IMG/VR virus record: IMGVR_UViG_3300042502_001233
Location: 1-64,000 of that record
Length of the DNA stretch: 64,000 nt
Reading direction: 5' to 3' (one strand)
Under the pieces are notes generated by a model. The model made no database searches, was not told the DNA's origin, and worked only from the letters and a program-made list of their open reading frames with translations. The position numbers and the translations under genes were made by a program. Positions 10,368-36,908 of the stretch are shown here, piece after piece; the first letter of the stretch is position 1, and each line of letters opens with the position of its first letter.

Positions 10368-10388
10368 CGCTTCCTTCTTTATCATTAG

Positions 10389-16493: not shown

Positions 16494-17219
16494 TTATGCT
16501 AACCTAAGTGGTTTCAAAAACTCTCTTAAGAAAGCATTCTTTGGGCCACCAATCTTTTCAACCCATTTTTGATAGTTGGCTTCGTTTCTTTCTTCCAACT
16601 CAACCTCAACTTTTTTGGATGGTTTGCGAACACCGTATGGTAGTTTTTCTTCCTGAAAATCTGGATACAATTCTCTGTTGAATACTCTCTCGTCAACCAA
16701 GAAAACAAAAGCTGTTAATTGGTCACCCAAATCTGGTTCAAAAAAGATACCTACTTTAACACCCATTTCAGTAATTTGTTTAAGATGTTTATTTAAAGTA
16801 CCCAATCTTTCTCTATTTCTATTTGTTGTACCACCATTAAGGATGATAAACGTTTTGTCTTCTTTAGCCCACTTATTGTATATTTTTTGCATTGGTTCAA
16901 GACCCAACGTATTTTGTTGATATTCTACAACAGCATGACCAAATTGGATACCAGCGTGTATTGTACCGCATAATTGATATGCAACTAAACCATACATACG
17001 ATACTCTAAATATTTATCTGTTTTTCGTTGTAAAGAATTTGATTTAACTTTACATTTACTTAAATGTTTAATAAACTCATCTTTAGTTATTTTTTTCTCA
17101 AAAAAATATTCTTCGGGGGTTAATTGTAAATCTGAATACCATTCACCCACATCTAAAACTCTAATATTACTATTTATACACCAGTTATACGAAGTATTTA
17201 TATTGTTATCATTTTCCAT
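16494..17219 (-). CDS. peptidyl-tRNA hydrolase 2-like protein with N-terminal extension
   Basis: IQFGHAV..W..TFIIL..FFEPDLGDQLTA; similar to 43940..44290. Confidence 0.6.
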   Translation of the reverse strand: MENDNNINTSYNWCINSNIRVLDVGEWYSDLQLTPEEYFFEKKITKDEFIKHLSKCKVKSNSLQRKTDKYLEYRMYGLVAYQLCGTIHAGIQFGHAVVEYQQNTLGLEPMQKIYNKWAKEDKTFIILNGGTTNRNRERLGTLNKHLKQITEMGVKVGIFFEPDLGDQLTAFVFLVDERVFNRELYPDFQEEKLPYGVRKPSKKVEVELEERNEANYQKWVEKIGGPKNAFLREFLKPLRLA

Positions 17220-17965
17220 CCTATTGTATTTTTTGCGTTTATTCTATTACCAATTATTTCTTTATCACTTATAAAAATATTTTGATTGTTTTTTAATACA
17301 TGGTATTGTAATTTATTAATCTTACAAAATTCTTGTAATTTTTTAGCACCTAATATTTTATATTCATCTTTGTTAGGTGAGATTAATAAATAAGTTTTAA
17401 CGTCAGACCTAATCACTGAATTGTTTGAACCTTTTCTTTTTTTACCATTTTCAATTATCTTTTTACGACCTTCATCTGTTAATTTTATTAAACCATTTTT
17501 ATGTAAAATTTTAACAGATTCTTTTTGTTTTAAACTTGTTGTTTTTCCATACATTGGGTTCTTCTCACCTTTTTTAGCTTCGCTTAATTTTTTTCTTGAT
17601 TGTTCGGTTCTTTTATAACCAGCTTCACCACCTTCAGTCATATTACACAATGTACCAGTTTCAATATCAATTCTACCAATTAAATCGATTAATATTTTTT
17701 CATAAACTAAAGATTCATTTTCTGTTATTGATTCGATTAGTTTATATCTAATAGGTTCAAAACCATCGTTTAAAATTTTTCTTAATTTATTATAAAATAA
17801 ACTATTTTTATTTTTATTAATATTAATTAAATGATGATTTATCCTATTTCTAGTTCCTTTACCAATGTACATTGGTTCATAATTAAACTTATATTTACCA
17901 TACACGTATTCACCCTTTTTTCTTGGGTCTAAATAAACATAAACATAGTATTTCTTTTCTTCCAT
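17198..17965 (-). CDS. GIY-YIG homing endonuclease with NUMOD3
   Basis: YYVYVYLDP...YIGKG..R...H; NMTEGG; GEKNPMYG. Confidence 0.88.
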   Translation of the reverse strand: MEEKKYYVYVYLDPRKKGEYVYGKYKFNYEPMYIGKGTRNRINHHLININKNKNSLFYNKLRKILNDGFEPIRYKLIESITENESLVYEKILIDLIGRIDIETGTLCNMTEGGEAGYKRTEQSRKKLSEAKKGEKNPMYGKTTSLKQKESVKILHKNGLIKLTDEGRKKIIENGKKRKGSNNSVIRSDVKTYLLISPNKDEYKILGAKKLQEFCKINKLQYHVLKNNQNIFISDKEIIGNRINAKNTIGWKMITI

Positions 17966-18299: not shown

Positions 18300-18509
18300 T
18301 TACCAACTATCGTAGTCGGTTATATCTTTTTTAACTTCAAACAATCCTTTTTCTTTGCTTTTTATAATAACTTCAATGTTATCACCAATACCAGTTGGTG
18401 TAAAGCAAAACGTTCTTGTGTAATATGTCTCATGACCGTATAATGTTTTAACAGCGTCTTCAACTTCTTTTAAGTTTTGTTTTTCTTTTTCGTTTAAACT
18501 AAAATCCAT
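18300..18509 (-). CDS. hypothetical protein
   Basis: MDFSLNEKE...DITDYDSW. Confidence 0.6.
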   Translation of the reverse strand: MDFSLNEKEKQNLKEVEDAVKTLYGHETYYTRTFCFTPTGIGDNIEVIIKSKEKGLFEVKKDITDYDSW

Positions 18510-19798
18510 TAGTGTTCCATTTGTATTAAATGAGAAATTGTACATTGTACTGGATTGTAAATGATAAACTCATCATTTCTCAAGTCAGCACCACCGTGAG
18601 CGTATACGCTATCAAAACCATCCTTTTGGATGTTAGAGTAACTCAAACTATAGCATGATGAATCATGTTTATGAATGTGTTTCTCGTTCCCTAAATGTAC
18701 ATCGAACAATGCCAAGAAACCTATTTGAGAATTCCCTCTAGTCCAATGAGAACCTGATAGAGAACTATACCCTAGCGATTTTTGGCTCTTGTTTGCAAAA
18801 TATACACCATCACCGAACATTGAACCAGTATACACCGCGCCAGAAGGTCTAATCATAAGACCAGTCTGAATAATGTTAAACCAGTTCTCGTTACGCGAAC
18901 CATGCCAGTAAAGTCTTTTCTTTTTAACTTTGGCAGTTTTAAAGTGAGCATCAAACTTAGCTTGTGTAGCCAAGTTAACCACTTTGAAAATCTTTTTAGC
19001 TTTGTTGGCGTTATCACCCAATAATTTGGTGATAAGGTTAAGAGTTTCACTGTCTTTTTCAACTTCAACTTTAAGACCCATTTGAGTAAGAATGTCAATG
19101 TCTGACATTTCTTCACCAGTGGTTTCAACAGTTTGTTTTTGTTGTTTGATAAGTTTAACCTGACCAGACATCGTATCTAACGCGCTTTGTTCTTCACCCA
19201 ACAACCTTTGTGCTTTTTCTAATTCAACATCGTCACCCAACCCTTGAACCAAATGGTTTTTAACGTTGTCCATCTTTCTTGGGATGATTGTGTAAAGCTT
19301 CAACAACTCGTTGTTAACGTCTTTAAGGTCACCACCAACTTTCAACATAGCAGTTACTCTTGATAACACTTCTTGAGCCGATTCCACTTGTTGTTCAGAA
19401 ACTGCATCTTGTGTTACTTTGTAGTTTTTCTGGATAGACTTATTCGCGTATGCCATAAGGTCTTGGACCAATTTCTTAACCATTGCGTCTTTGATTGCTT
19501 CAACGGTATTGTTTTTTGATGCACCGTTTGAATCATCAACAACTGGTTCAGCTAACAATTCAGTTACGTCAGTGTAACCTTTGGTTGATGACGTTTTTTC
19601 GCGTAAGATTTTATCCCACTCGTTTTTACTTTTAAACACAGTAGCCATGTTTTTACCCACTCTACCATACTCACATTTTATTCTACCATCTGAAAGTTCT
19701 TCCATGATGTAGACTTTGTTGCTATTGTCTGTTTTACCATTGTCTACCGACACGTGAATCAGTTTAGCATATCTTAACCCGTTTTCTTTTGTAACCAT
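18509..19798 (-). CDS. PARP-like ADP-ribosyltransferase (WGR + regulatory + catalytic)
   Basis: YGRVG; LYTIIP; YWHGSR, GSMFGDGVYFA, KSLGY, NDEFIIY (H-Y-E triad). Confidence 0.9.
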   Translation of the reverse strand: MVTKENGLRYAKLIHVSVDNGKTDNSNKVYIMEELSDGRIKCEYGRVGKNMATVFKSKNEWDKILREKTSSTKGYTDVTELLAEPVVDDSNGASKNNTVEAIKDAMVKKLVQDLMAYANKSIQKNYKVTQDAVSEQQVESAQEVLSRVTAMLKVGGDLKDVNNELLKLYTIIPRKMDNVKNHLVQGLGDDVELEKAQRLLGEEQSALDTMSGQVKLIKQQKQTVETTGEEMSDIDILTQMGLKVEVEKDSETLNLITKLLGDNANKAKKIFKVVNLATQAKFDAHFKTAKVKKKRLYWHGSRNENWFNIIQTGLMIRPSGAVYTGSMFGDGVYFANKSQKSLGYSSLSGSHWTRGNSQIGFLALFDVHLGNEKHIHKHDSSCYSLSYSNIQKDGFDSVYAHGGADLRNDEFIIYNPVQCTISHLIQMEH

Positions 19799-19852
19799 GT
19801 TAAATAATTTTTGACAAATATACCATTATAATTTTAAACCACCAAATATTTT

Positions 19853-20128
19853 TTAAAAACCTTTAAAATCATCTGGAAGTCTTTGACAAATGTTGTTTTT
19901 CCACCATTCGCTAAATATTATCTTGTTAAAATAATATCTCCATAAATGTGTAGCCCATAAAAACACGCATTCAGCTATTAACTCAAGACGAAATAAATCT
20001 TCCAAATCATCAAAAAATTCTGGGTCATTATCAACCATAAAACTCATTTGCAGACCATACATGATTCCTCCGATTAAAATATACGTTAATAGTAAAATCA
20101 TAATAATACTTACCATAGTTATTTCCAT
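19853..20128 (-). CDS. membrane protein
   Basis: hydrophobic N-terminus. Confidence 0.6.
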   Translation of the reverse strand: MEITMVSIIMILLLTYILIGGIMYGLQMSFMVDNDPEFFDDLEDLFRLELIAECVFLWATHLWRYYFNKIIFSEWWKNNICQRLPDDFKGF

Positions 20129-20325
20129 TTTTTAGTTACATCGTCAAATTTTGACTCATTATTTGTCACATAATCCAAAAACAATTTTTGCATTGCTGGT
20201 GGAACTGGATATCCGTTGACATAAACAACGTCCATCACTATTTCGACTTCTTGACCAGCTGGAAGTGGCATATCTTTTGCCACTTCAACACCCTCTTTAA
20301 GTCTGTAAACTTTATTCTGTATCAT
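20119..20325 (-). CDS. hypothetical protein
   Basis: 68-aa ORF. Confidence 0.65.
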   Translation of the reverse strand: MIQNKVYRLKEGVEVAKDMPLPAGQEVEIVMDVVYVNGYPVPPAMQKLFLDYVTNNESKFDDVTKKWK

Positions 20326-20444
20326 TTGAATTCATTCGTTTTTTATTATTAATATACGTTATTTTCTAAAAAAAATAAATAGTTTTCGCTAAAAAACTTT
20401 AATTATTTTTAACTACTAACTCTTTCTTTATCAAATATTTAAGG

Positions 20445-21521
20445 TTATGACAACCCAACTTTTTCGTTTAATCTTTGGGAGAAAAACTTTTTAGAAATTT
20501 CAGAAACATATTTACCAATATCCTTTATTTCTAACCCTTCATCGCTAATAGTTTGAAGCTCTTCTTTTACTATGTCATTCATAACTGATTTTATATATTT
20601 ACCAGTATCTTTAACATCGAAAGTACCACCATTTAACGTGTCAAATGTTTCATTAAGCATTTGTTCAAGTCTCCAAGCTGGGGTGATTTTTTCAGCTAAG
20701 TCTATGCATTTTTGTACCCTCGCATCATCAACTGGTTTGAGTGTTTTAACTTTTGAAACACCAGCGTGTTTCTCACCTTTAGATTTGAAAAAGATTCTAA
20801 CACCATTTTCATCTAAATTTGAAAAAACAATCCCTTCACCTACAGTATTTGGAAAACCAAAGTGTTTAGCCACTGGACATTCGTCTTCAACACTTAAAGT
20901 CATTTCAATCATTTTGTTTTGACTAAGTTCAGGTCTATTAAAATCAATTTCAATTTCATATGTTTGAAAATCTAACATATTGTAAATTCTTTTTTCGTTA
21001 TCCCTGAAACCTGAATAATCGACCCAATAAGCTGGGTTGTTTTTTAATTCTTCTTCATTTTCTACGATAGGTGAAATCTTTATACCATAGATAAACACCG
21101 ATTTTTCAATATTGGTAATACCAACACCTTTTTGAATATTAGAACCAGCCCACTCTGAATAAACACCAATTGTGTTATTATCCAAATCGATACCGTATTT
21201 ATCAGCTATTTCGTTGATGATTCTCAACCAAGATTCTTTTGTTGATTCTGCAAAAAAAGCAAAACCAGCATTGTCGGATTGAGGGGTGATGATATTACCT
21301 CTACTCTGACACCACATACCTGATTTGTTATTAAACAAAACACCAGCTGAAGTACCGTGTAGTTTAACAGTACCAATAAATTTAATAATTGGTTTTGGTT
21401 TAGATGGGTCGTAAATAGGCTCACCATTTTCATCTAAACCACAGAAGTTATGTTTTCTGTTTACATCACTAACAACCTCTCTAAATTGAGGGGTTGATGG
21501 GTATTTTACCATTTTTTTCAT
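20445..21521 (-). CDS. RNA ligase, Rnl2 family
   Basis: KLHGT motif I, GEGIV, FKSK. Confidence 0.8.
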   Translation of the reverse strand: MKKMVKYPSTPQFREVVSDVNRKHNFCGLDENGEPIYDPSKPKPIIKFIGTVKLHGTSAGVLFNNKSGMWCQSRGNIITPQSDNAGFAFFAESTKESWLRIINEIADKYGIDLDNNTIGVYSEWAGSNIQKGVGITNIEKSVFIYGIKISPIVENEEELKNNPAYWVDYSGFRDNEKRIYNMLDFQTYEIEIDFNRPELSQNKMIEMTLSVEDECPVAKHFGFPNTVGEGIVFSNLDENGVRIFFKSKGEKHAGVSKVKTLKPVDDARVQKCIDLAEKITPAWRLEQMLNETFDTLNGGTFDVKDTGKYIKSVMNDIVKEELQTISDEGLEIKDIGKYVSEISKKFFSQRLNEKVGLS

Positions 21522-21653
21522 AGTATAATTTTTTTAGTAGAAAAAATGGGTGTTATCACACACCCATTTTTGTTTTTAATTTTATTGTTATTGTTTTGAA
21601 GTACAAATATACTACTTTATTTTGTAACCTCCAAATTTTTTATTGTTTTTTGA

Positions 21654-23057
21654 TTAATCTACCAATAAGGTTTTAATCATGTTTTCAATTTCTTTTATAG
21701 ACTCCAAGGAATCACACGTGTCTTTGTCGTCTCTAAACCCAGCAAAAGAAGGGTATAACAATGAGTAATTACCATCAACATCGTTTGATAACCCGTTACA
21801 TTTACATTGGATTACAGTACCCAACAAATTCTCTTGGTTTTCTGTGATATAAGCCATCATATCTTCTTTAAGACCTTGTGGTCTTGTTTTAACCAACCCA
21901 TCAGAAGACTCGCAGTTAAAGCTAGAGATTACATTCTCATTCTTTGTTCCTTTGGTTCCGTAGTTGAACCCTACAATACGTAAATCAACATCCATTTCCA
22001 ATTTCATTTTGATTTGCCACGTTGGTTTTCCGTCTTTCCACTCACCATTCCATGCTTTAAGGATTGTACCTTCTTCACCAGCAGCCAATACTTCTTGGAA
22101 GTGGGTCATAGCTTGTGCATAATTGTGAACAATAAGACTTTCAACGATGTTTACATGTGTTGGACCAACTCTTTCGATAGCTCTTTCCAAATATGCTAAA
22201 CGTTCAGCGTATTTAAGTTTTGATGATTTGTTGAAGTATTCATCTACTGTAAGACGGTCCCATACGGTATAACGAATTTTGTCTAGAGCTTCTTCCATCG
22301 AACCATGTTTGTCAGTGAATGCTTTTAATTTTTTCTCATTTTCTTTGTCACTTCTAGAATCTTTTTTACCCAAGATGTCGATAAGTGACGCGATGATACC
22401 GTTAGACTCGTATCTAGGGGTATCAACCATAGTTAACTCTCCGTTAAGAACACAATCTTCAAATGAAGTTAATTCATCTAAGAATTTAGCGCCAGTTAAG
22501 ATTGTTGGTTCACCTTGACGTGATTCCATTTCAACTTCACCACTACGAATAACAGCGTTGCAGTAACGACCATCCATTTTTATTTGTGATATTCCTTTAC
22601 CACCTTTTTCGAAAATTTTACGAGCTTTCTTCTCGTCGAAAGATACAGCACCCATATAAGGTGTGTCTTCAATAAGGTCTTTGAATACTTTATTCATAAA
22701 AGTAGTTCCCATACCAATCTTACAGTCTTTCTCAATGATACGTTCAATGATGTAAGCATCTTCTGGTTGTAAATTAGACAAAACATTTACTAATAAAGTT
22801 AACGCTTCATTACCCGAAACTTCTCTATTTGATATACTTTCTAATATATTTAAACCCCAATTCAAATCTCTTGATGGTTCAAATATTTGTCTTGTGTATT
22901 CAGGAATTCTTTTAATATAGAATTTAACTCGTTTAGAGTTTGCCATGTATAGCACTTTCTTTAGTAACTCGTTATCCGAGTACTTTCTAAGGATATCAAC
23001 CTTAGCGTTGTTACCGCTCTCAGCAGCAATCTCATCAAAAATTTGTTTGATTGTCAT
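21654..23057 (-). CDS. ATP-dependent DNA ligase
   Basis: KMDGR, LNGEL, EGTILK, KMK, OB-fold end. Confidence 0.92.
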   Translation of the reverse strand: MTIKQIFDEIAAESGNNAKVDILRKYSDNELLKKVLYMANSKRVKFYIKRIPEYTRQIFEPSRDLNWGLNILESISNREVSGNEALTLLVNVLSNLQPEDAYIIERIIEKDCKIGMGTTFMNKVFKDLIEDTPYMGAVSFDEKKARKIFEKGGKGISQIKMDGRYCNAVIRSGEVEMESRQGEPTILTGAKFLDELTSFEDCVLNGELTMVDTPRYESNGIIASLIDILGKKDSRSDKENEKKLKAFTDKHGSMEEALDKIRYTVWDRLTVDEYFNKSSKLKYAERLAYLERAIERVGPTHVNIVESLIVHNYAQAMTHFQEVLAAGEEGTILKAWNGEWKDGKPTWQIKMKLEMDVDLRIVGFNYGTKGTKNENVISSFNCESSDGLVKTRPQGLKEDMMAYITENQENLLGTVIQCKCNGLSNDVDGNYSLLYPSFAGFRDDKDTCDSLESIKEIENMIKTLLVD

Positions 23058-24568: not shown

Positions 24569-24816
24569 TACCAACTAATTTTTAAATAACCACCATCTCT
24601 AAAATCCCCATCAACATACTTGGTTTTAAAACCACGTTTGTTTAACTCTTTGATTGTTAAATCATCTGGATAACATGAAACATCGCAAGAAAATTGATTT
24701 CTTTTTACTGACATTTCTATGGATTCCAAACAAAGTTTTATTTGTTTTTCAACTTTTTCACCTAAAATTGTTTCTGCTGTTTTTCTAGCCCAATCGGCTG
24801 TAATGTTTTCTTTCAT
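24568..24816 (-). CDS. hypothetical protein
   Basis: 82-aa ORF. Confidence 0.65.
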   Translation of the reverse strand: MKENITADWARKTAETILGEKVEKQIKLCLESIEMSVKRNQFSCDVSCYPDDLTIKELNKRGFKTKYVDGDFRDGGYLKISW

Positions 24817-24854
24817 ATATATTATTTTAAAGGTTATGCTCTAACCCATAAGGA

Positions 24855-25805
24855 TTAGAGCATTTTGTATAACAATTTGTCATCGTAGTTAACTATGAAG
24901 TCTTCTACTGAATCAACTTTACCATCAACCAACCCAAAATACAATCCAGTGAATTGTTTTAAGTCGTGTTTTCCACAAACTTCAAAGACAGCCGCAGCGT
25001 ATCTTTTCTTTTCTTCTTTGGTTATGTTTCTTGGTTTACGAGCGCTTAACTCACCCCACATTTCATTTAACTTTACAGTCAATTTGTCGTAGTTCTCTTT
25101 AAGTCTTAACAATTCGTCTTTTCTTTCTGGGAAAGTTGAGGCGAATTCTTCTATCTCGTTAGATTTAACGATAGTTATGATATTGTGTTCAGCAGTTTTA
25201 CCTTTAAGGTGATGTGCGTGTACGTAAGCTGGGTTTTTTATCTTGATACGATTGAAATTAGCGTCTACAACAACGTAACCTTCTTCTGACCATGGCATAC
25301 CCTCAAATGTACGTAACAACGCACCCACATCTTTAGCGTTCAAGTCAAATCTTTTAACCAATGGTAATCTTAAAGATACGGATACCATTTCTAAGTCTTT
25401 CCAAGACAATTCCACTAAAGTCACTCGGTTTCTAACAGTCAACAAAGTTGCTGATGATTCTCCGTGTGGTGCTACAACGATATTGTATGGAGTAGTTAAC
25501 TCAAAAACGTATACGTGGTCTTTATCCAACATACATGGGTTTAACGCGTATTGTTTTGTTACAGTATCCCAAAATAACGAGTTGAATGTTGTTCCCATTT
25601 TGTTGTTTACTTCACCTTCACCTTCGGCTGTACCAGTTGTACCAGCAAACCATTTATTAGCGTGCCAATCCCAATATACTTGGATTAATGAATTATGTAC
25701 TAGAATACCATTAGCGAAAAAATTATTAGTTATTTTGGTTTGAATGTCGTATCTTTTAGATTCACAAGTAATTGATTTGATACTTTTTATTTTAACTATT
25801 TTCAT
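24855..25805 (-). CDS. split intein C-fragment (38 aa) + RNA ligase 1 C-extein
   Basis: ...NNFFANGILVHN|SLI; FELTTPYN, EGYVV, RIKIK. Confidence 0.9.
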   Translation of the reverse strand: MKIVKIKSIKSITCESKRYDIQTKITNNFFANGILVHNSLIQVYWDWHANKWFAGTTGTAEGEGEVNNKMGTTFNSLFWDTVTKQYALNPCMLDKDHVYVFELTTPYNIVVAPHGESSATLLTVRNRVTLVELSWKDLEMVSVSLRLPLVKRFDLNAKDVGALLRTFEGMPWSEEGYVVVDANFNRIKIKNPAYVHAHHLKGKTAEHNIITIVKSNEIEEFASTFPERKDELLRLKENYDKLTVKLNEMWGELSARKPRNITKEEKKRYAAAVFEVCGKHDLKQFTGLYFGLVDGKVDSVEDFIVNYDDKLLYKML

Positions 25806-26719
25806 TTTAATAAATTTATTTGTTCAACAATAAATAACTCCAACTCAATATCATTAAGCGATGATATATCCATTTCCCATAATGTGATAACTTTGTATTG
25901 ATTTTTATATGCAATATCTATTTTTTTTTCATCTTTCTTCCATATAGTTTCAGCTAAGACATGTTTTTTTGGGAATGGTAATATATCACCAATCTTATAT
26001 TTTCTTGGGTTAGCGTGCCAAAAATCACCATTTACTTCAATAAGAATATTAGTATTGTTAATATAGTAATCAAATACTTTACCTTTTAACGTAAATTGTG
26101 GTTCAAATTTAAGTCCGATATCAATCAAAATCTTACCAACTCTTTTTTCCAAAATAGAAGAACCGCCACTACATAGTCTTTTTATTTGATTTAGTTTTTG
26201 TTCTTCGGTATATGAATACCAACCACTAATTCTTTTTACACCATATTTTTTTAACATTAATTCATTAACATTATCTTTAAATTCATCAAGTTTAAAGATA
26301 TTATCAACACCATAATTTTTGATAAAAGTTTTTTGTTTTTTTTCTTTTATTGATTCGTTGTTTGAGACATTATCAACACCAAAACGTTTAAAACAAGTTG
26401 TTTTATATTTATTTCTAACTGATTTTTGATTACTTATTTCTTTTGATGATTTCAACTTAATATTATTTAATTTTAATAGTGAAGTTAAACTTTTATTAGG
26501 TATTTTATATTCTTTAACCAAACTAAAAACAGAACCGTCATTAATATATTTTTTAATAATTTCACCTATTAACACATCAGTTAAACCAAACCTTGTTTTT
26601 AAAACAAACAATTCTAGTTCAGTTTCATTTTTAAATTCACTATTGTGACTATTTTTAACGTGTAATTTAAACATTTTACTATCAAATTCACACTCACATT
26701 TTATACATTTAATCTTCAT
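25802..26719 (-). CDS. free-standing Vsr/DUF559-like endonuclease
   Basis: FDYY..IEVNGDFWH...D..K...LWE; YGVDN repeats. Confidence 0.8.
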   Translation of the reverse strand: MKIKCIKCECEFDSKMFKLHVKNSHNSEFKNETELELFVLKTRFGLTDVLIGEIIKKYINDGSVFSLVKEYKIPNKSLTSLLKLNNIKLKSSKEISNQKSVRNKYKTTCFKRFGVDNVSNNESIKEKKQKTFIKNYGVDNIFKLDEFKDNVNELMLKKYGVKRISGWYSYTEEQKLNQIKRLCSGGSSILEKRVGKILIDIGLKFEPQFTLKGKVFDYYINNTNILIEVNGDFWHANPRKYKIGDILPFPKKHVLAETIWKKDEKKIDIAYKNQYKVITLWEMDISSLNDIELELFIVEQINLLK

Positions 26720-26776
26720 AACTTTTTTTTATTATAAATATCTAGAAATATTAGAAAAGTTAGATTAGTATCAAAT

Positions 26777-27379
26777 TTATTTAGTAATTAATAAAAATTC
26801 ATCTTCTTCTGTTAATTCGCTGACCATTCTATAACAATTTAGTTTAGGTAACCAAACTTTATGATTTCCAGTTAATTTAACGGTAGTCCCATCTTCTAAT
26901 TCAATTTCAAACCAATCGTTAATATTCTTCTTAACTGAATAATCAATAATCTCGTCATACATTGGTTCATTACTTTCTAAATCTAATGATAAAACTTTAC
27001 CAGAATACTTAGTTTCACATATCTCACGAATCGTCATTTCACCATCTTCAGTTATAAGAACAGTGTCCTCATGACAGCAACCATCAAGTTTCTCTAACAC
27101 ATTGGCTGTGTTCCAATCTATTTTAGCAGCGTTTCCTTCTTCAGCGTTGAAGAATTTACGGAACGCCAACGACATAACTTTCCACGTACCTTTTTCAAGA
27201 ATAAGACCACGACAATCTTGCATCTCTGGCAACCCCATAAGAGTTGGTGACGATAATTGGTCATATTTCAAAAGAATCTTGTTATCGTATTCTCTTGATT
27301 TAAGTTTAAAGTCATTTATAGCTTTATCTAGTCCATATTTTTTTATATATGTAACGATAGCTAATTCATTATTTTTCAT
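26777..27379 (-). CDS. RNA ligase 1 N-extein + split intein N-fragment (100 aa)
   Basis: CRGLIL, KFFN, EKLDG|CCHEDT...LTGNHKV. Confidence 0.9.
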   Translation of the reverse strand: MKNNELAIVTYIKKYGLDKAINDFKLKSREYDNKILLKYDQLSSPTLMGLPEMQDCRGLILEKGTWKVMSLAFRKFFNAEEGNAAKIDWNTANVLEKLDGCCHEDTVLITEDGEMTIREICETKYSGKVLSLDLESNEPMYDEIIDYSVKKNINDWFEIELEDGTTVKLTGNHKVWLPKLNCYRMVSELTEEDEFLLITK

Positions 27380-27397
27380 TTTTTTTTTATTTTTAAA

Positions 27398-28243
27398 TTA
27401 AAAAATATACCTGATAGTTTCTAAAGGAAAATACTTAGAATATAAATCTTTAAACTCTAATATTAAACCATGTTTGAAACGTCTTTCATATCTGATGTTA
27501 TCAGCAGCATACTGAGAATCTTTAGCTTCTTGTAACTCAGGAATACTAAGTAGATTATTTACTTCTAAAGTATTTCTTTTAAGTTGAATATTATTGTAAG
27601 TTAAAAAGATACATTCTGATTTAAACTCAATACCTTTCAACATTTCAAACAACTCTTTATAATCATCTAACCAATTTGGATAATATACAATAGGACTAAA
27701 GTTAATATGAACTTCCATTTTTTCTTGAAGAATAGGAATCATTGCAATTCTATCAGCGATACTATCCGTTTTAGGTTCTAAAACATCTGATATTTTTTGA
27801 GGTATTAAACTAATTCTTATTCTATGCTTATTTGCAGCTAAATTATAGTCTTGTATATTAAACTTTGTTGGGTATTTGGTTGCAAAAGTAGTTTTTACTT
27901 TGTCATGTGTGTTGAAAAAATCAAATACTTGTTGCCACTCATAGTGTTTACCATGTAAAGGCACATCAGTACTACACCCTATATCTATACAATAGTAAGT
28001 GTCATCAACTTGATTTGACACTTTAGGCCATGGCTTGGATTCAACCCATTTATTAACGGAAGCTAAGATTTGCTCTGTGTTTTCGTTGATATAAACCTTG
28101 TCAGCATTATATCTACCTACATAACAATATGACTTCATACACCCACCAAGACAACCATATATAAAATTAGGTGAAATAGCGTCACTACTTCTATCATTAT
28201 CTCTGGTTATTAAGGTTTTAGTTTTTTGTTTCTTAATTTCCAT
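27398..28243 (-). CDS. spore photoproduct lyase-like radical SAM protein
   Basis: GCLGGCMKSYCYV, FATKY, RIRISL, NFSP. Confidence 0.75.
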   Translation of the reverse strand: MEIKKQKTKTLITRDNDRSSDAISPNFIYGCLGGCMKSYCYVGRYNADKVYINENTEQILASVNKWVESKPWPKVSNQVDDTYYCIDIGCSTDVPLHGKHYEWQQVFDFFNTHDKVKTTFATKYPTKFNIQDYNLAANKHRIRISLIPQKISDVLEPKTDSIADRIAMIPILQEKMEVHINFSPIVYYPNWLDDYKELFEMLKGIEFKSECIFLTYNNIQLKRNTLEVNNLLSIPELQEAKDSQYAADNIRYERRFKHGLILEFKDLYSKYFPLETIRYIF

Positions 28244-28669: not shown

Positions 28670-29311
28670 TTATTTTGAATAATAATAACTTGGGATTCTT
28701 ATTTTAACACCGTGTCTAGCACCCAAAGCATCAACACCTTCTGTAAATCTAGTATCAAAACCACAAGTTTCTTCAACGACACCCGTAAGATAAAGAGTAT
28801 ACTGAGCTTTACCCAACCAATCTTTTTCTTTTCTAATATCACTAACACTTACTATTAAACCGTTGAATGTATGGTCTTTCATAAACTCATTCAATTCTTC
28901 TTTAAGGGTTTCTTCATCAATATCCATTTGAAATGGAACACCCATAGATGTTAGTGATTCGCTAACCATTTCGTTGTATCTTCCGAAACTTCCGTTTATT
29001 AAAACTTGGAATGGAACCCATTTAACCACATGTGGTTCATTATGGTTTATTTTACCAGAATACTTGGCTAAATAAGTATAACCCATGTTACCACTTTTAT
29101 GTATCGCAAATACCAATTGTAAATCAGAAATATCCAAACCAGTTTCTTCTTTACATTCTCTTATGGCTGTTACCATAGGGTTTCCGATGTCTTCTATTTC
29201 ACCTTTGCCGCCGATTAACCCAAAATCATTATGATTATCTTTTCTAGAAACACCAAGTATTAACCCGTCTTCATTTATTAATACAACTTGTGACGTATAT
29301 TTTATTTCCAT
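28670..29311 (-). CDS. Nudix hydrolase
   Basis: GGKGE...TAIRECKEETGL Nudix box. Confidence 0.9.
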   Translation of the reverse strand: MEIKYTSQVVLINEDGLILGVSRKDNHNDFGLIGGKGEIEDIGNPMVTAIRECKEETGLDISDLQLVFAIHKSGNMGYTYLAKYSGKINHNEPHVVKWVPFQVLINGSFGRYNEMVSESLTSMGVPFQMDIDEETLKEELNEFMKDHTFNGLIVSVSDIRKEKDWLGKAQYTLYLTGVVEETCGFDTRFTEGVDALGARHGVKIRIPSYYYSK

Positions 29312-29391: not shown

Positions 29392-29544
29392 ATGAAGAAT
29401 AAATATAAAACGAAAACAAAAGTAAATTATTCTATTAATTCCGAAATAGTTAATAGTTTTAATGATTTAGCTGATAAAAAATCAGTTAATAAATCAAAAT
29501 TAATAGGTCAATTAATACAAAAATGGATAAATGAAAACTTATAA
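29392..29544 (+). CDS. small ribbon-helix-helix-like protein
   Basis: KVNYSI...NKSKLI..LI; similar to ORFs at 49280, 49493, 54207, 54421. Confidence 0.65.
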   Translation: MKNKYKTKTKVNYSINSEIVNSFNDLADKKSVNKSKLIGQLIQKWINENL

Positions 29545-30169
29545 AATTTACACTTTAAACCATCCAATTACTAATGAAATACGTTATGTTGGACAAACTG
29601 TTTATGAACTTAAAATAAGGTTAAGAAAACATTTAGTTTCTAAAGATAAATCATATAGGACAAACTGGATACAATCATTGTTAAAACAAGATTTAAAACC
29701 GATAATAAATTTAGTTTTAGATAATTTATCAAAAGAAGAAAGTAATTACTATGAACAATATTATATACAAAAATATAAAGAAAACGGTGTTAACTTAGTC
29801 AATTTAACAAACGGTGGTGAAGGTAGTAATGGGTTTCGTCATAGTGAAGAGACTAAAAAATTATTATCCAATATTAGAAAAGAACAAAAAGAAAAAAATA
29901 TACTAAAATTTAACTCTATAAATAATAAAATTAGTAAAACTAAAACACCTAAAATTGATATTGAGGTTTATTCCGCTAACGTGATAAATCAAAAAGGTAG
30001 AAGAAATATTAAGCAATTTACATTAGATGGTGAATTTATCCGAGAATTTATCTCATTACGAGAAATAGAACGAGAATTAGGTTATTTTAGAGCAAATATA
30101 ACACCTTGTTTAAAAGGTGAGTTTAAACAGGCTTATAATTTTATATGGAAATACTCTGATGAAACTTAA
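29531..30169 (+). CDS. GIY-YIG homing endonuclease
   Basis: KIYTL..RYVGQT..R..H; NLTNGGEG, HSEETKK. Confidence 0.9.
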   Translation: MKTYKIYTLNHPITNEIRYVGQTVYELKIRLRKHLVSKDKSYRTNWIQSLLKQDLKPIINLVLDNLSKEESNYYEQYYIQKYKENGVNLVNLTNGGEGSNGFRHSEETKKLLSNIRKEQKEKNILKFNSINNKISKTKTPKIDIEVYSANVINQKGRRNIKQFTLDGEFIREFISLREIERELGYFRANITPCLKGEFKQAYNFIWKYSDET

Positions 30170-31313: not shown

Positions 31314-32252
31314 TTAGGACCCCTTTTTTATTTCAGTTACTATACCTTTAATAGCAAAGTTTTTTATTTTTTGCCATTTGGTGATGTTGTTTGACATCAC
31401 TGGTTTACCACCATCTGGATTTATTGCAATCGTAATGTGTGGTATTGCATTGGCTGATGGATAACCTTCTACTTTGACCGCCATGGCCATATCGCTAAGA
31501 CCTATGGCTTCAACATACAACGTTACCTCTTTACCTAAGTCTTCTTTGTTTGGAACACCTTTACCGAATACAATTGTCATGTGGTGAGCAAATACTTTCC
31601 AACCTTCTGGGATATAATCATCAAGTCTAGATAACAACGCTGCTTTAGAACCATTATCCAATACAACAGCTGAATATAACACATCAGATTCTTTGTACAT
31701 GTCTTTAGACTCCAAAACACTTTTCAATGTTAGCAATCCTTGACCTTTGTGAGATTCAATCAATGATTGAATTTTTTCCAATGGTACACCGTGAGTATTT
31801 CTCTCAGCAAGTATTTCCGCTGGTAACCCGTTGGTACCTATATCAACAAATTTTATGTTGTTATCAGACAAACCTAATTCTAACGCTGCTTTCACATACG
31901 CTTTGGATTCGTTTTGTTTGATGTTCGTGTTATCCACAATAACTGGTGATAATCCTTCTTTCAAAGATTTTATCGCATTTTTCAAGTTTGTTGAGTGCGC
32001 TCTTGACAATGGTGTGAAATCTTTCGACTCAAACATTGCTGCAAAGAATTTGTTGTAATCACCTTGTGACTCAATAACATCGTCTGTGGAGTGTATGATA
32101 CCTTCACCTACTAGTTCTTTAGCTTTTGTGGATTTACCAGAACCTGGTATACCGCGCATAACTATCAGTTCTTGTGTTGGTCTTGTAACTACAACACCCA
32201 ACGCATTTTTTTTCATGTCTTCTCTTAATATTGTTCTTATTTCTTTTTTCAT
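31314..32252 (-). CDS. polynucleotide kinase-like P-loop + 2H cyclic phosphodiesterase (RNA end healing)
   Basis: GIPGSGKS, VDNTN, RNTHGVP; HHMT and HIT motifs. Confidence 0.8.
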   Translation of the reverse strand: MKKEIRTILREDMKKNALGVVVTRPTQELIVMRGIPGSGKSTKAKELVGEGIIHSTDDVIESQGDYNKFFAAMFESKDFTPLSRAHSTNLKNAIKSLKEGLSPVIVDNTNIKQNESKAYVKAALELGLSDNNIKFVDIGTNGLPAEILAERNTHGVPLEKIQSLIESHKGQGLLTLKSVLESKDMYKESDVLYSAVVLDNGSKAALLSRLDDYIPEGWKVFAHHMTIVFGKGVPNKEDLGKEVTLYVEAIGLSDMAMAVKVEGYPSANAIPHITIAINPDGGKPVMSNNITKWQKIKNFAIKGIVTEIKKGS

Positions 32253-32276
32253 TGTGCAAATGTATATATTAGTTTT

Positions 32277-33038
32277 TTAACTAGCAACTTTTTTATATAA
32301 TAATTTTTTAACGTTTGGTGTCAAAGAGAAATTTGGAATTTCTTTTAAACACCATTTAAGATAATGCGGTGCTGTTTTGGCAATCTCTCCAACTGTTTTA
32401 CCTTTGTTCTTACCAAAATTAATCACATCATCTTCATCCAACGCTTTTGATACTTTGGTTGTGGCTGGTTTCTTTTTATCTTCCATTAACATAAGTTTAG
32501 AATCTTTTAAATCAACCATGTGAAGCATAATCTTAGCCTCATCTTTAGCATCAGCGCCAGCTCTATGTTCTTCAACATATACCTCACCGTCCTTCATAAA
32601 GAATTGGTTATAAATCTCTTCCACCGATGGTCTTTTGGTTTTACCATTCTTATCTTTGTATTGTGAGTATTGTGTGGCTGTTTGCATAAGACACTTAACG
32701 TCTTTCATTTCAAACCCAGCAGCTTTCAAGAATCTAAGGTCAAATGATTTGTTATATGCGGTCATTTTGTATTTGTCAAACAATTCTTGGAGTTCTTCTC
32801 TGTAATCATCCAAAGATTTCGCATTTTCAACGTCTTCAACCGTAAGTGTTGTGTTTTGGAATATCCAAGAGTTCTTATGTCTTTTTGAGTTAAACTTATC
32901 GTGTTTAATTACGTTATCGAAAACTATTTCGATTTTTTTGGTTACGGTATCCACTAAGGCAATACCTATTTCTACGATAGCATCAGACTGCGCGTAAAAA
33001 CCTGTTGTTTCAATATCTACTACTAATAATTTCATGTA
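32277..33038 (-). CDS. DEDDh 3'-5' exonuclease
   Basis: DIETTG, YNKSFD, HRAGADA; C-terminal FGKNKG domain. Confidence 0.85.
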   Translation of the reverse strand, partial: YMKLLVVDIETTGFYAQSDAIVEIGIALVDTVTKKIEIVFDNVIKHDKFNSKRHKNSWIFQNTTLTVEDVENAKSLDDYREELQELFDKYKMTAYNKSFDLRFLKAAGFEMKDVKCLMQTATQYSQYKDKNGKTKRPSVEEIYNQFFMKDGEVYVEEHRAGADAKDEAKIMLHMVDLKDSKLMLMEDKKKPATTKVSKALDEDDVINFGKNKGKTVGEIAKTAPHYLKWCLKEIPNFSLTPNVKKLLYKKVAS

Positions 33039-33066
33039 TTTTGTTGTTATAAACAAATATACTAAA

Positions 33067-33999
33067 TTAAGTTTGATTTATCAAGTGAATAATTGAAGGG
33101 TTGTAAACTATTATGTGTTTTATATTTTCATAGTCTTTATTTACTATGATTCCGTCAATACCTAAAGAAACACAATTTCTAACAAATTCAACTGGGTTAT
33201 ATCTGTAAAAATCAATCCATACTTGAAGAATGCAGTCTTTTTCGTTATCATTGAAGTTCATACAACCTTCAACAAATTCTTGCATACCTCTTATTGGATT
33301 TTCGTCCCAATTTTGTGCACTACCTTCCCAATCTTCAGCCATCATAGCTAATTTTTTGATATAAGGTCTTAATTTATTTTTGTTTATTGGAACTTGGTCA
33401 AATAAAACTCTTGGTGTTAGTTTTACACTATAGATATTTTCACCATAACGACCAGCTTCTTCTTTTGATGTGGTGAAGTAAATACCTGGACCTTCTAGGT
33501 CATTGGCTTCTTTACCACCAACAAAATCATCCATAAATTTAGTTATTTTGGTTGGGCTACCGTGAAATACGTAGTATTCACCACCATCGATTGATTCTGG
33601 TAATAAATTTTCCCTAAGCAAAGTCTTAATCAAAAACTTATTCTCGTTTAACGAATTTAACATAAAATTACAGTTTGGAAATAAAATAATTTCATTGGTT
33701 TCACCATCTTTCATTGTGATAATCGCATCATAACCCAAACCCATTAATTTTTTTGTTAATTGTTTACCCTTGGCTTTATATTCTTTAGCCAATTCGTATT
33801 TGTAAGAAATTTGGGTGTCATCGTCAACCTCTATTGTAAGTGGATTTTTTATTACAGCCAAACCAGAAACCCATGGTTCTTTAACTGGTCTATCAGTATC
33901 TTTTTCAATCACATATGTACCAGATGGTTCAACATCTTGACCGAACATAGAACCGTAGTATTGTGCTGGTTCCATGTTTTTCATTATCCTTAATATCAT
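33067..33999 (-). CDS. ADP-ribosyltransferase-like (ART-PolyVal-type) protein
   Basis: FHGS, GPGIYFT..A..Y, GIDGII; second degenerate N-terminal copy (GYDAII). Confidence 0.6.
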   Translation of the reverse strand: MILRIMKNMEPAQYYGSMFGQDVEPSGTYVIEKDTDRPVKEPWVSGLAVIKNPLTIEVDDDTQISYKYELAKEYKAKGKQLTKKLMGLGYDAIITMKDGETNEIILFPNCNFMLNSLNENKFLIKTLLRENLLPESIDGGEYYVFHGSPTKITKFMDDFVGGKEANDLEGPGIYFTTSKEEAGRYGENIYSVKLTPRVLFDQVPINKNKLRPYIKKLAMMAEDWEGSAQNWDENPIRGMQEFVEGCMNFNDNEKDCILQVWIDFYRYNPVEFVRNCVSLGIDGIIVNKDYENIKHIIVYNPSIIHLINQT

Positions 34000-34039: not shown

Positions 34040-34127
34040 TGGAGGAGAATATGGGATTCGAACCCATGGGCCGAACTAACGGCCACGGTTTAGCAAACCG
34101 CTCCAATAACCACTCTGGCAATTCTCC
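34040..34127 (-). tRNA. tRNA-Ser(GCT)
   Basis: class II cloverleaf with CCA. Confidence 0.93.
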
Positions 34128-34134
34128 AAATTTG

Positions 34135-34170
34135 TACCCCTACAGGGACTCGAACCCCGATTCTAGCCTT
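34135..34170 (-). pseudogene. orphan 3' half of a tRNA
   Basis: GGCTAG-AAT-CGGGG-TTCGAGT-CCCTG-TAGGGGT-A directly after the HNH stop codon; no 5' half. Confidence 0.7.
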
Positions 34171-34771
34171 AATTTTTGTAATTTTTTAAATATCGGTCTT
34201 TTCTAGCTGAGTTTTTATTTTTAGATTTATATGTATCTAATTGTGAATCACAATTATGACATATTAACCTTAAATTATTTCTCATATTATTAGACGCATT
34301 TCCGTTAATATGGTCTAAAATAAAATTCATAGGTTTACCATTCCAAACATTTTTAATATTACATATATCACATTCACAATTTTGTTCTATTAATATATGT
34401 TTTTTCAATGGTGCTAAATCTTTATTAGCGTTACAAAAATCTTCTTGATTACTCAAATAATTTTTATAGTATTCTTCAGTTTTATGTTTTACCCAACATT
34501 CTTTATTACAATATAATTGTTTATCATAAGAAGTGTTAACTTCTTTACCACAACACAAACAATTTATTTTCTTACCCTTACCAGTGTTAACTGGTTTGAA
34601 ATTTTCACCAAATTTTGCTCTGATTGGTAATTCAATTCCTAATCGTTTACATACTTTTTTTATATATGTATCAGAAACACCGTATTTTTCACCAATTTTT
34701 CTATAAGAAATTTTTTGAACAAAAATTAAATCTTCTAGGTCTACTTTTTTATATTTTTCATTATAATCCAT
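34169..34771 (-). CDS. HNH homing endonuclease
   Basis: LDHINGN...NLRLICHNC. Confidence 0.85.
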   Translation of the reverse strand: MDYNEKYKKVDLEDLIFVQKISYRKIGEKYGVSDTYIKKVCKRLGIELPIRAKFGENFKPVNTGKGKKINCLCCGKEVNTSYDKQLYCNKECWVKHKTEEYYKNYLSNQEDFCNANKDLAPLKKHILIEQNCECDICNIKNVWNGKPMNFILDHINGNASNNMRNNLRLICHNCDSQLDTYKSKNKNSARKDRYLKNYKN

Positions 34772-34849
34772 AATATTTTTTTATTATAAATATAATGAAT
34801 TCGAACCAAAAGTCAACTATTTTTAAATTTAATTTTATGTTCAGATTTG

Positions 34850-34922
34850 TGACCTTATCGGGATTCGAACCCAAACGACAAATTTAGAAGATTTGTATGC
34901 TAATCCGTTACATCATAAGGCC
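34850..34922 (-). tRNA. tRNA-Arg(TCT)
   Basis: CAAAT-CTTCTAA-ATTTG. Confidence 0.88.
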
Positions 34923-34940
34923 AGTTATTATTTAATGTTG

Positions 34941-35014
34941 TGGCTCCGACAGGGCTCGAACCTGTGACCCACAGATTAGAAATCTGTTGCTCTGTCCATC
35001 TGAGCTACGGAGCC
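34941..35014 (-). tRNA. tRNA-Arg(TCT)
   Basis: ACAGA-TTTCTAA-TCTGT. Confidence 0.93.
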
Positions 35015-35021
35015 AATTTTT

Positions 35022-35098
35022 TGGTGACCACGGTAGGATTCGAACCTACAACCTCCGCAGTCGTAATGCGGTGCGCTATCCAGTTGCGCCACGTGGCC
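35022..35098 (-). tRNA. tRNA-Arg(ACG)
   Basis: CCGCA-TTACGAC-TGCGG, CCA. Confidence 0.93.
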
Positions 35099-35104
35099 AG
35101 TATT

Positions 35105-35177
35105 TGGTACCGAGTATGGGAGTCGAACCCATGTATTCATCTTTATGAGGGATGAACGTTTTCCTATAACCCTCGGC
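35105..35177 (-). tRNA. atypical tRNA with CAT anticodon (Met/Ile2)
   Basis: short D arm, extended anticodon stem TTCATC/GATGAA, CCA. Confidence 0.65.
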
Positions 35178-35183
35178 ATTTTG

Positions 35184-35257
35184 CGGCCTCGACAGGATTC
35201 GAACCTGTAACCCTTGAGTTAACAACTCACCGCTCTAACCATTATAGCTACGAGGCC
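35184..35257 (-). tRNA. tRNA-Asn(GTT)
   Basis: cloverleaf, G73. Confidence 0.9.
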
Positions 35258-35264
35258 TTTTTTT

Positions 35265-35340
35265 TGGCGGCCTAGGTAGGATTCGAACCTACACGCCTCA
35301 CCTTAACAGGGTGCCGCTCTACCGTTGGAGCTACTAGGCC
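35265..35340 (-). tRNA. tRNA-Asn(GTT)
   Basis: cloverleaf, CCA. Confidence 0.92.
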
Positions 35341-35446
35341 AATTTTATATTTTTATCAATACACCGAGTACCACAATTACGGTGCGCCTCTGGCCTACTC
35401 GCCAGCAATGCTGTTTTTACCCGTGGTTACACCATTTGATAGGGTG

Positions 35447-35520
35447 TGGTCCCCTCGGGACTCGAACCCGAAACCGTCGCGTTATGAGCGCGCTGCGCTA
35501 ACCAATTGCGCCAGAGGACC
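35447..35520 (-). tRNA. tRNA-CAT (Ile2 or elongator Met)
   Basis: GCGCG-CTCATAA-CGCGA. Confidence 0.88.
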
Positions 35521-35763
35521 TTATTTACGTTTTTCAACAAGATAGTTAATGTAATCTTCGTAGCCATCATCATCATCATCATCATCATCATAATCATCAT
35601 CTTCTGGTTCAAAGTCTTCATCTAACATTTTATCCAGAACTTCAAAAGCTATTTTCATTACTTCGTTTTCTTTACCCTTTAATTGTGGGTTAGGAAGCAA
35701 AATGAACAATCCAACTATGGCTTCTACCAATCCTTTTTCATTTTCACTATATTGTCTTTTCAT
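35521..35763 (-). CDS. acidic hypothetical protein
   Basis: poly-Asp encoded by GAT repeat. Confidence 0.6.
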   Translation of the reverse strand: MKRQYSENEKGLVEAIVGLFILLPNPQLKGKENEVMKIAFEVLDKMLDEDFEPEDDDYDDDDDDDDGYEDYINYLVEKRK

Positions 35764-35765
35764 AG

Positions 35766-35849
35766 TTGTGACGGTGGGGCTCGAACCCACATTGTGTTAT
35801 AAACACCCAGCGTATCAGGCTGGTGACTAAACCATTCATCCACATCACA
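35766..35849 (-). tRNA. tRNA-Ile(GAT) with long variable arm
   Basis: CCAGC-CTGATAC-GCTGG + GTGTT-TAT-AACAC hairpin. Confidence 0.8.
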
Positions 35850-35856
35850 GTTTTCG

Positions 35857-35930
35857 TGGGTAACACGGGAGTCGAACCCATAACCTCTCGCGTATCAGGC
35901 GAGTGCTCTAACCAGTTGAGCTAGCTACCC
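35857..35930 (-). tRNA. tRNA-Ile(GAT)
   Basis: canonical. Confidence 0.93.
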
Positions 35931-35938
35931 ATTATTTG

Positions 35939-36011
35939 CACGGACCAAGAGAATCGAACTCTTTCCATTCGAGGTTTTGGAGACCTGATGCATGCCATTA
36001 TGCTGGCCCGT
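35939..36011 (-). tRNA. tRNA-Trp(CCA), slightly atypical
   Basis: AGGT-CTCCAAA-ACCT, G73. Confidence 0.8.
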
Positions 36012-36019
36012 ATTTAATT

Positions 36020-36113
36020 TATCACCAAAGGATTCGAACCTTTACACCCTTCTCGGGTTACCGTTTTCACTACAGCAGTCAGTACCCAGTTTACTCTTTT
36101 GACTCACGTGATA
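36020..36113 (-). tRNA. degenerate tRNA-Ser(TGA)-like
   Basis: acceptor, long variable arm, T arm; enlarged D loop, G33. Confidence 0.45.
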
Positions 36114-36120
36114 AATTTAG

Positions 36121-36207: not shown

Positions 36208-36216
36208 ATGTATTTC

Positions 36217-36849: not shown

Positions 36850-36908
36850 TTCTCTTTCTTTCTAAATAAATATCTTAAGAAAGAGAAAAGTACAAAAAAG
36901 TTTAAGAG

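Follow-up and report, generated by a model that had tools for sequence, protein, structure and literature searches.

A gene for a T4 Rnl1-type RNA ligase in a freshwater phage of 362 kb is very probably a fractured gene, in which a 1388-bp mobile element sits between Gly100 and the Ser/Thr of ligase motif I and the two separately encoded protein halves would be joined by trans-splicing. The gene occupies positions 27379-24855 of the DNA analysed here (the window: 64,000 nucleotides (nt), bases 1-64000 of the 362,018-bp virus genome in record IMGVR_UViG_3300042502_001233). Three successive, co-oriented open reading frames (ORFs) on the minus strand fill this interval. They encode the N-terminal part of the ligase (the N-extein) fused to the N-terminal half of an intein (IntN), a free-standing endonuclease, and the C-terminal half of the intein (IntC) fused to the remainder of the ligase (the C-extein); coordinates are given in Table 1. 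The virus record is rated complete by CheckV and is without end repeats. The window has a GC content of ~31% and carries nearly all of its genes on the minus strand, and near-identical DNA is present in lake-water metagenomes of several studies. An earlier, sequence-only reading of the window had proposed a naturally split intein in an RNA ligase with an endonuclease gene between the halves. The structural claims of that proposal are all borne out: its coordinates and the lengths, charges and motifs of IntN and IntC agree with the ORF list and with a check of the sequence, the halves are those of a class-1 intein inserted at EKLDG/S and match complementary parts of one profile, uninterrupted homologues are colinear across the junction, and the gene between the halves is a 305-residue Vsr-like ORF.

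The anatomy of the element and its exact insertion site are seen directly by comparison with an intein-less allele, L022, which lies on a syntenic contig. Nucleotide identity between L022 and the window is 93.6% over 29357-27080, where the match breaks off, and 89.8% over 25685-24561, where it resumes. These breakpoints define the extra DNA as 27079-25692, exactly 1388 bp, running from IntN through IntC, and its boundaries coincide with the first Cys and the last Asn of the intein. Window and L022 agree in all 36 nt preceding the site, differ in 6 of the 9 nt directly after it and agree again in the next 27 nt; the stretch of 9 nt encodes Ser-Leu-Ile in the window and Thr-Leu-Ile in L022. Intein-less alleles mostly have Thr, rather than Ser, as the residue following the site (+1). 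The cluster of substitutions looks like the outcome of co-conversion or of selection for a site that can no longer be cleaved (target immunity). The N-extein of the window is 99% identical to that of L022, and its C-extein is closest (96%) to a different empty allele, P0001.

The intein halves have the make-up of a class-1 intein: Cys1 after the N-extein, TxxH in block B, a C-terminal His-Asn and Ser at +1. IntN comprises residues 101-200 of the N half, starts with CCHEDT and has block B as L-T-G-N-H at residues 169-173 (T170, H173); IntC comprises residues 1-38 of the C half and ends in ILVHN, Ser39 opening the C-extein. Their net charges are -13 and +5, respectively. All six occupied alleles compared keep C1, T(G/A)NH, ILVHN and Ser+1, and across 148 members of the wider clade described below C101 is invariant and T170 nearly so. 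We considered the second Cys of the CC pair as the true Cys1 and rejected it. Allele L042 reads CL in place of CC, and homologues are without an extra residue at the junction; the first Cys is therefore Cys1. Pfam family Intein_splicing matches IntN at profile positions 5-90 (E 1.1e-6; Hint also matches) and IntC at 121-155 (E 1.3e-5), both below the 35.8-bit whole-domain cut-off, as is expected because each query is half a domain. The gap in the profile between 90 and 121 places the cut where endonuclease domains usually nest. The nearest solved relatives are the DnaE inteins for IntN (E ~0.01) and the NrdJ-1 split intein (8ubs, E 2.4e-4) for IntC. A complex prediction for EKLDG-IntN with IntC-SLIQVYW scored 0.78, against 0.00 for the best of three controls (the complex-prediction mark was reached by 51 of 78 solved complexes and by 2 of 108 mismatched pairs), although the score may partly recall solved split inteins, so that it speaks to likeness and cannot show splicing. 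The prediction supports binding of IntN to IntC.

The interrupted gene encodes a ligase of the T4 Rnl1 type. With the C-extein as query, 1015 homologues were returned, nearly all of them single proteins of 374-378 amino acids (aa) and up to 96% identical. In alignment with uninterrupted homologues the two exteins abut exactly, EKLDG being followed by (T/S)LIQVYW, with exact colinearity over the junction. PHROG 562 (T4 gp63 RNA ligase) matches the N half at profile positions 30-108 and the C half at 107-357. The window halves on their own give weak or no Pfam ligase matches; the intein-less homologue P0012, whose first 100 residues are near-identical to the window N-extein (by inspection of the alignment) and which is 91% identical to the C-extein, matches RNA_lig_T4_1 with 53.9 bits (cut-off 28.3) and T4 Rnl1 structures (2c5u) at E 5e-8. 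The alignment with T4 Rnl1 spans residues 49-266 only, leaving the C-terminal domain unaligned. It pairs motif I (EKLDGTL in the homologue, KEDGSL in T4 Rnl1), motif III (FEL/FEF), motif IV (EGYV/EGYV) and motif V (IKIK/FKIK), the last three of which are located in the C-extein. The motif I lysine of T4 Rnl1 is the residue that becomes adenylylated. Its predicted counterpart here is Lys97 of the N-extein, and the motif alignment thus puts the intein three residues after the adenylylated lysine. That splicing would rebuild motif I, as the sequence-only reading had expected, agrees with the EKLDG(T/S)LI of intein-less homologues and with the T4 motif.

T4 Pnkp and Rnl1 form a tRNA repair pair. 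In the neighbourhood of the split ligase the window encodes a kinase (AAA_33) with a tRNA-ligase CPD-like domain, an ATP-dependent DNA ligase, a CCA-adding-type enzyme and 32 tRNA genes. By analogy with the T4 pair, the spliced ligase would most likely seal broken tRNAs. The phage also encodes an Rnl2-type ligase.

The protein encoded between the halves consists of an N-terminal CxxC...H element, DUF7487 repeats (Pfam, 45.5 bits; cut-off 27) and a C-terminal nuclease of the Vsr-like, EDxHD type, to which Pfam gives a weak Vsr match. More than 340 homologues were found, several of them named Vsr by their sources. A search of the PDB with the single sequence was not significant (E ~0.1), significance being reached only by profile and fold search. 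A profile of 28 homologues matched the catalytic domain of I-Bth0305I (3r3p, E 2.9e-4) and E. coli Vsr (1cw0, E 0.011), and an AF2 (AlphaFold) model of the protein (predicted local distance difference test, pLDDT, 87) gave Foldseek matches of which the top four in the PDB were all Vsr or I-Bth0305I (1cw0, E 3.6e-4; 3r3p, E 4.2e-4, template modelling (TM) score 0.72; 1vsr also matched). The modelled endonuclease directly displays a Vsr-like fold. Residues D217, E228, D232, W234, H235 and D263 are invariant in the 28 homologues and all present in the window protein, and its E-V-N-G-D-F-W-H stretch aligns to I-Bth0305I and Vsr. The CxxC...H element (residues 5-20) is nearly invariant among homologues, which supports the start assigned to the 305-aa frame. 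The ratio of non-synonymous to synonymous substitution rates (dN/dS) of the gene, measured against allele L008, is 0.17. The intact conserved residues, the predicted fold and this ratio together suggest that the endonuclease is probably active. In one sequencing run (X4), a single Logan contig joins 26198 to 26549 and so skips 350 nt of the endonuclease gene; the joint is anchored by 20 letters on one side and may be a deletion variant or an assembly quirk, too weak to interpret.

We propose the following course of events for an element laid out as IntN, stop codon, spacer, EDxHD/Vsr-like homing endonuclease gene and IntC with its own start. The half-proteins of 200 and 316 aa would be produced separately, the C half being probably coupled in translation to the endonuclease through an ATGA overlap, in which the IntC ATG shares bases with the TGA stop of the endonuclease gene. 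The acidic IntN and the basic IntC would associate into one HINT domain and follow the class-1 pathway, with an N-S acyl shift at Cys1, attack by Ser+1, cyclisation of Asn38 and an O-N shift. The product would be a 378-aa ligase (~44 kDa) with motif I restored as EKLDGSLI, in which Lys97 could then be adenylylated; the expected tryptic peptide across its junction is LDGSLIQVYWDWHANK. The restored ligase would act in tRNA repair with the neighbouring kinase/CPD-like protein. In homing, the endonuclease would cut intein-less alleles during co-infection, and recombination would copy in the whole element. Because the ligase is interrupted so close to its catalytic lysine, three residues away, it should be strictly dependent on protein trans-splicing for its activity.

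We compared the site across 66 loci from IMG/VR, one NCBI assembly and Logan contigs. About 55 related loci are empty at the ligase site, and at least six occupied alleles at the same site form a series of endonuclease decay. The gene is intact in the window and in L008, split into two ORFs in L019, and decayed in L042/L043, where a remnant of 375 nt is left that is truncated at the 5' end and has Arg in place of the catalytic His. L038 and L052 are free of the endonuclease and have unrelated spacers of 111 and 145 nt in its place, with the IntN stop and the separate IntC ATG both retained. Over the six alleles, pairwise dN/dS was 0.05-0.26 for IntN and 0.07-0.32 for IntC, with the exteins in the same range, and in the endonuclease-free pair L038/L052 it was 0.06 and 0.09; these values are rough, dS being near saturation for many allele pairs. 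Both intein halves are thus under purifying selection, also after loss of the endonuclease.

The composition and divergence of the element differ from those of the ligase around it. Its GC content is 0.29 in IntN, 0.23 in the endonuclease gene and 0.22 in IntC, against 0.34-0.37 in the exteins. IntN is 79-86% identical between phages whose C-exteins share just 57-73%, and when the window is compared with L008 the endonuclease has a dS of 0.43 and IntC one of 0.51, against 0.71 and 1.21 in the exteins. These patterns of identity and dS, together with the different closest empty alleles of the two window exteins (L022 and P0001), would fit horizontal spread of the element, with recombination around the site. 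A search restricted to IntN gave 53 clusters of N halves (at 90% identity), most of them with an RNA-ligase N part and ~50 stopping at the same point; at least 16 of the 53 have a longest contig of the same length as that of an endonuclease cluster and so probably share contigs with it. In two related phage contigs (L037, 3009-4271; L039, 6402-7664) the RNA ligase is uninterrupted, and a gene ~1.6 kb downstream of it has a distant IntN (28%), a piece of a Vsr-like endonuclease (33%) and an IntC (53%). This downstream gene appears to be another fractured gene.

In the full library, 651 representatives match IntN at E<=1e-3, 279 of them at E<=1e-10. Among the best 150 relatives, 148 end within 15 residues of the IntN end and are thus split N halves. 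The residues before Cys1 in the best 150 are KxDG in 80, KxHG in 28, KxEG in 6, KxDG plus 1-2 residues in 17 and K(T/S)DExR in 14. Pfam places the PHA02142 OB-fold domain (a putative RNA-ligase family) in 60 of the 148 members, RNA_lig_T4_1 in 20 and an NAD-dependent DNA ligase adenylation domain in 2. On these figures, and as judged from sequence relatives, the intein is part of a large lineage that is split almost without exception and nearly all of which lies at motif I of RNA and DNA ligases. In the sole contiguous form in the best 150 (P0358, 520 aa), an Rnl1-like ligase, a mini-intein occupies the same KxDG/C site. Four residues connect its IntN-like and IntC-like parts, and an IntC-like Met is retained; this mini-intein is either ancestral or a split intein that has fused again.

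A broader proposal, to which we would give slightly less than an even chance, is that the lineage has specialised on nucleotidyltransferase motif I (K-x-D/H-G), has moved among ligase families that are distant from or unrelated to each other (Rnl1-type, PHA02142-type and NAD-dependent DNA ligases) and persists without an endonuclease, so that the fractured state would be an evolutionarily stable end-point and not a passing stage of the homing cycle. The phage may even use the split state to gate ligase activity, for example via the conserved Cys1-Cys2 pair.

Several observations weigh against trans-splicing at this locus. The His of block F is replaced by Asn in the window allele (NNFF, versus HNFF in L052 and NrdJ-1), which could slow splicing. 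The runs in which the locus was found are DNA only, with no RNA run among them, and scans for sigma-70 promoters and terminators gave counts no higher than the shuffled expectation, and thus no signal for separate genes. The sub-threshold Pfam scores, the limits of the complex prediction and the roughness of dN/dS noted above count on the same side.

The strongest rival is that the gene is broken and does not splice, being either a dead ligase pseudogene, inactivated when the endonuclease inserted, or a protein whose intein halves act as non-covalent dimerisation tags (compare phage Aeh1, whose NrdA is split without an intein). Fractured genes that lack inteins and whose products assemble non-covalently are known (PMC3045599; an SbcD-like case is in PMC2677866); the Rnl2-type ligase of the phage might cover a lost ligase function, and the block F substitution would suit an intein that has ceased to splice. 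We nevertheless consider this rival unlikely. The residues needed only for the chemistry of splicing (Cys1, the block B Thr and His, the terminal His-Asn and Ser+1) are kept in the six alleles and across the clade, and their conservation is hard to reconcile with a dead gene or a non-covalent assembly. Purifying selection acts on the two exteins as well as on the two intein halves (dN/dS 0.05-0.3), and without splicing motif I stays interrupted three residues from the catalytic lysine.

Removal of the intervening 1.4 kb from the RNA, as a group I or II intron or by other processing, followed by translation of a continuous mRNA, is a very improbable alternative to protein trans-splicing, even though EDxHD endonucleases also occur in group I introns, such as I-Bth0305I in recA (PMC3239194). 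A search of Rfam (4227 families, permissive filters) returned nothing at E<=1 on either strand of 24600-27600, and no group I intron. In the spacer before the endonuclease gene (26720-26776; 90% conservation in allele L008), RNA structure is not significant (z 0.60) and promoter signals do not rise above chance. The endonuclease is flanked on both sides by coding intein halves under purifying selection, the boundaries of the insertion fall at the first Cys and last Asn of the intein, and the endonuclease-free alleles retain their stop and start codons, all of which argues against an RNA-level event. Read-through by the amber-reading tRNA(CUA) of the window was also considered and is irrelevant, because the IntN stop is TAA and the endonuclease stop is TGA, with several stops in frame between the halves.

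Least probable of all is an artefact of assembly or gene calling that turned a contiguous intein or an intact gene into three ORFs: the window does come from a metagenome-assembled virus record with low depth over the locus in public runs (3-8x), but contigs from four independent lake-water runs, of independent samples and studies, show zero differences at every junction and stop codon, the identical three-ORF layout recurs at 82-88% nucleotide identity in one NCBI assembly and in Logan contigs, and the ~50 N-half clusters share the same end. No joint skipping the 1388-bp element was found among the contigs aligned to the locus.

The fractured ligase lies among other mobile and repair-related genes (Table 1). 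Just upstream of it are a spore-photoproduct-lyase-like gene and a NUDIX gene, and a cluster of repair and modification genes spans 18509-23057 and 31314-33999. The window has five further free-standing genes of homing-endonuclease type: two with GIY-YIG and NUMOD1, one with GIY-YIG and NUMOD3, one with a weak HNH_3 match and one that is Vsr/DUF559-like. The two GIY-YIG and NUMOD1 genes sit on the opposite strand, where the AT skew flips locally, and the stop of the Vsr/DUF559-like gene, the second of its kind in the window, overlaps the start of the gene for the CCA-adding-type enzyme. The 32 tRNA genes of the 64 kb are on the minus strand; among them are one whose CUA anticodon reads amber and another for which a 4-base anticodon is called. 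The stop codons of the 46 window ORFs of at least 150 aa are TAA in 40, TAG in 3 and TGA in 3, and we do not claim recoding.

Table 1. Features of the split ligase locus and of its surroundings, in window positions.
Feature	Positions	Strand	Remarks
N half: N-extein and IntN	27379-26777	-	200 aa, TAA stop
Middle ORF: endonuclease	26719-25802	-	305 aa, TGA stop
C half: IntC and C-extein	25805-24855	-	316 aa
N-extein of RNA ligase	27080-27379	-	100 aa, ends with motif I E-K-L-D-G
IntN	26780-27079	-	100 aa; TAA stop at 26779-26777
AT-rich spacer, IntN stop to endonuclease start	26720-26776	-	~13% GC
Free-standing homing endonuclease gene	25802-26719	-	305 aa
IntC	25692-25805	-	38 aa, ends V-H-N
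C-extein of RNA ligase	24855-25691	-	278 aa plus stop, starts with Ser
Spore-photoproduct-lyase-like gene	27398-28243		just upstream of split ligase
NUDIX gene	28670-29311		just upstream of split ligase
PARP-like	18509-19798		repair/modification cluster
Rnl2-type RNA ligase	20445-21521		repair/modification cluster
ATP-dependent DNA ligase	21654-23057		repair/modification cluster
Kinase with tRNA-ligase CPD-like domain	31314-32252		AAA_33; repair/modification cluster
RNase T-type exonuclease	32277-33056		repair/modification cluster
ART-PolyVal ADP-ribosyltransferase	33067-33999		repair/modification cluster
CCA-adding-type enzyme	39608-40801		
Homing-endonuclease-like gene	12137-12946	+	
Homing-endonuclease-like gene	29531-30169	+	
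Homing-endonuclease-like gene	17198-17965	-	
Homing-endonuclease-like gene	34169-34771	-	
Homing-endonuclease-like gene	40798-41673	-	
SNF2/DEAD-type helicase	45306-49202	-	1298 aa, C-terminal methyltransferase domain
tRNA genes (32 in all)	954-10459, 34040-36982, 43608-44423, 57057-57943	-	
tRNA with CUA anticodon	44350-44423	-	amber-reading
tRNA called with 4-base anticodon	5320-5393	-	

Elsewhere in the genome (G000) a second fractured gene, at ~115.4-118.1 kb (L002/L003), encodes the large subunit of ribonucleotide reductase, as a 493-aa N half with an IntN and a 365-aa C half with an IntC that ends ILVHN before Cys; between them lies a different free-standing nuclease of 346 aa, TnsA-like or endonuclease I-like. 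Three more intein matches (L005, L007 and L006, at G000 ~238.3, 221.3 and 81.4 kb) comprise a ClpB-like AAA_2 ATPase with a contiguous mini-intein, an 849-aa frame with a LAGLIDADG-containing intein and a 647-aa frame that starts with an intein C part. In total, at least five inteins, in three architectures, are present in this phage.

Fractured genes with split inteins, among them gp41-1, NrdJ-1 and IMPDH-1, were described by Dassa et al. in 2009 (PMC2677866), and the likeness that the sequence-only reading had drawn to the known layout of phage split inteins holds against that paper. It lists eight DNA-metabolism enzymes, including one fractured DNA ligase (Lake Gatun), never mentions RNA ligase, and reports Vsr-like endonucleases in half of its fractured genes. 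The EDxHD endonuclease family was characterised by Taylor et al. with I-Bth0305I as prototype (PMC3239194; PDB 3r3p), and inteins have been reported in RtcB-type ligases of actinophages. In the literature searched, we found no paper joining a split intein with an Rnl1-type ligase. A megablast search of GenBank phages with the locus gave zero matches, and a protein search of the same phages gave distant ligases only (<=39% identity) and no annotated fractured RNA ligase. The suggestion that an Rnl1 host is uncommon therefore stands for the literature searched and fails for metagenomes, in which ~50 N-half clusters and a clade of at least 279 representative clusters were found. The layout has been known since 2009; what is new here is the host enzyme and the insertion site.

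With this host, naturally split inteins and fractured genes reach beyond DNA-metabolism enzymes to an enzyme of RNA repair. The states of the allele (empty, intact, broken, remnant, endonuclease-free split and one contiguous relative) make a natural data set for the model of gene breaking and the homing cycle. The pair of a 100-aa IntN and a 38-aa IntC with Ser+1, together with its relatives, offers candidate trans-splicing tools of the gp41-1/NrdJ-1 type.

The locus shares with the fractured genes of Dassa et al. the order N-extein-IntN, stop, endonuclease gene, IntC-C-extein in one orientation at one locus, a Vsr-like endonuclease whose 3' end overlaps the start of IntC, the setting in freshwater phages and the Cys1/Ser+1 chemistry, and its IntC is recognisably similar to that of NrdJ-1. 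It differs from them in its Rnl1-type RNA ligase host, in the insertion inside motif I and in an overlap of 4 nt, compared with 6-69 nt in the paper; the hairpins seen there upstream of the endonuclease were not detected here, the spacer being without significant structure. Identity to solved split inteins is low.

The endonuclease resembles I-Bth0305I in its Vsr-like C-terminal nuclease with conserved Glu, Asp and His and in a modular N-terminal region that probably binds DNA. I-Bth0305I, however, is encoded in a group I intron of recA, whereas the window enzyme is free-standing inside a split intein and has DUF7487 with CxxC...H as its N-terminal region. With T4 RNA ligase 1 (gp63; PDB 2c5u, 5tt6) the host enzyme shares the RNA_lig_T4_1 match and motifs I (K-x-D-G-S/T), III, IV and V, and it too has a kinase/CPD-like healing enzyme and many tRNA genes nearby; the relationship is distant, the C-terminal domain does not align, and the window gene is split by an intein. 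Like the Npu and Ssp DnaE split inteins, the best solved sequence matches of its IntN, the intein is of class 1, with an acidic IntN of ~100 aa and a basic IntC of ~36-38 aa. In contrast to the DnaE halves, which lie at distant loci, are without an endonuclease and use Cys+1, the halves in the window are adjacent, enclose an endonuclease gene and are followed by Ser+1.

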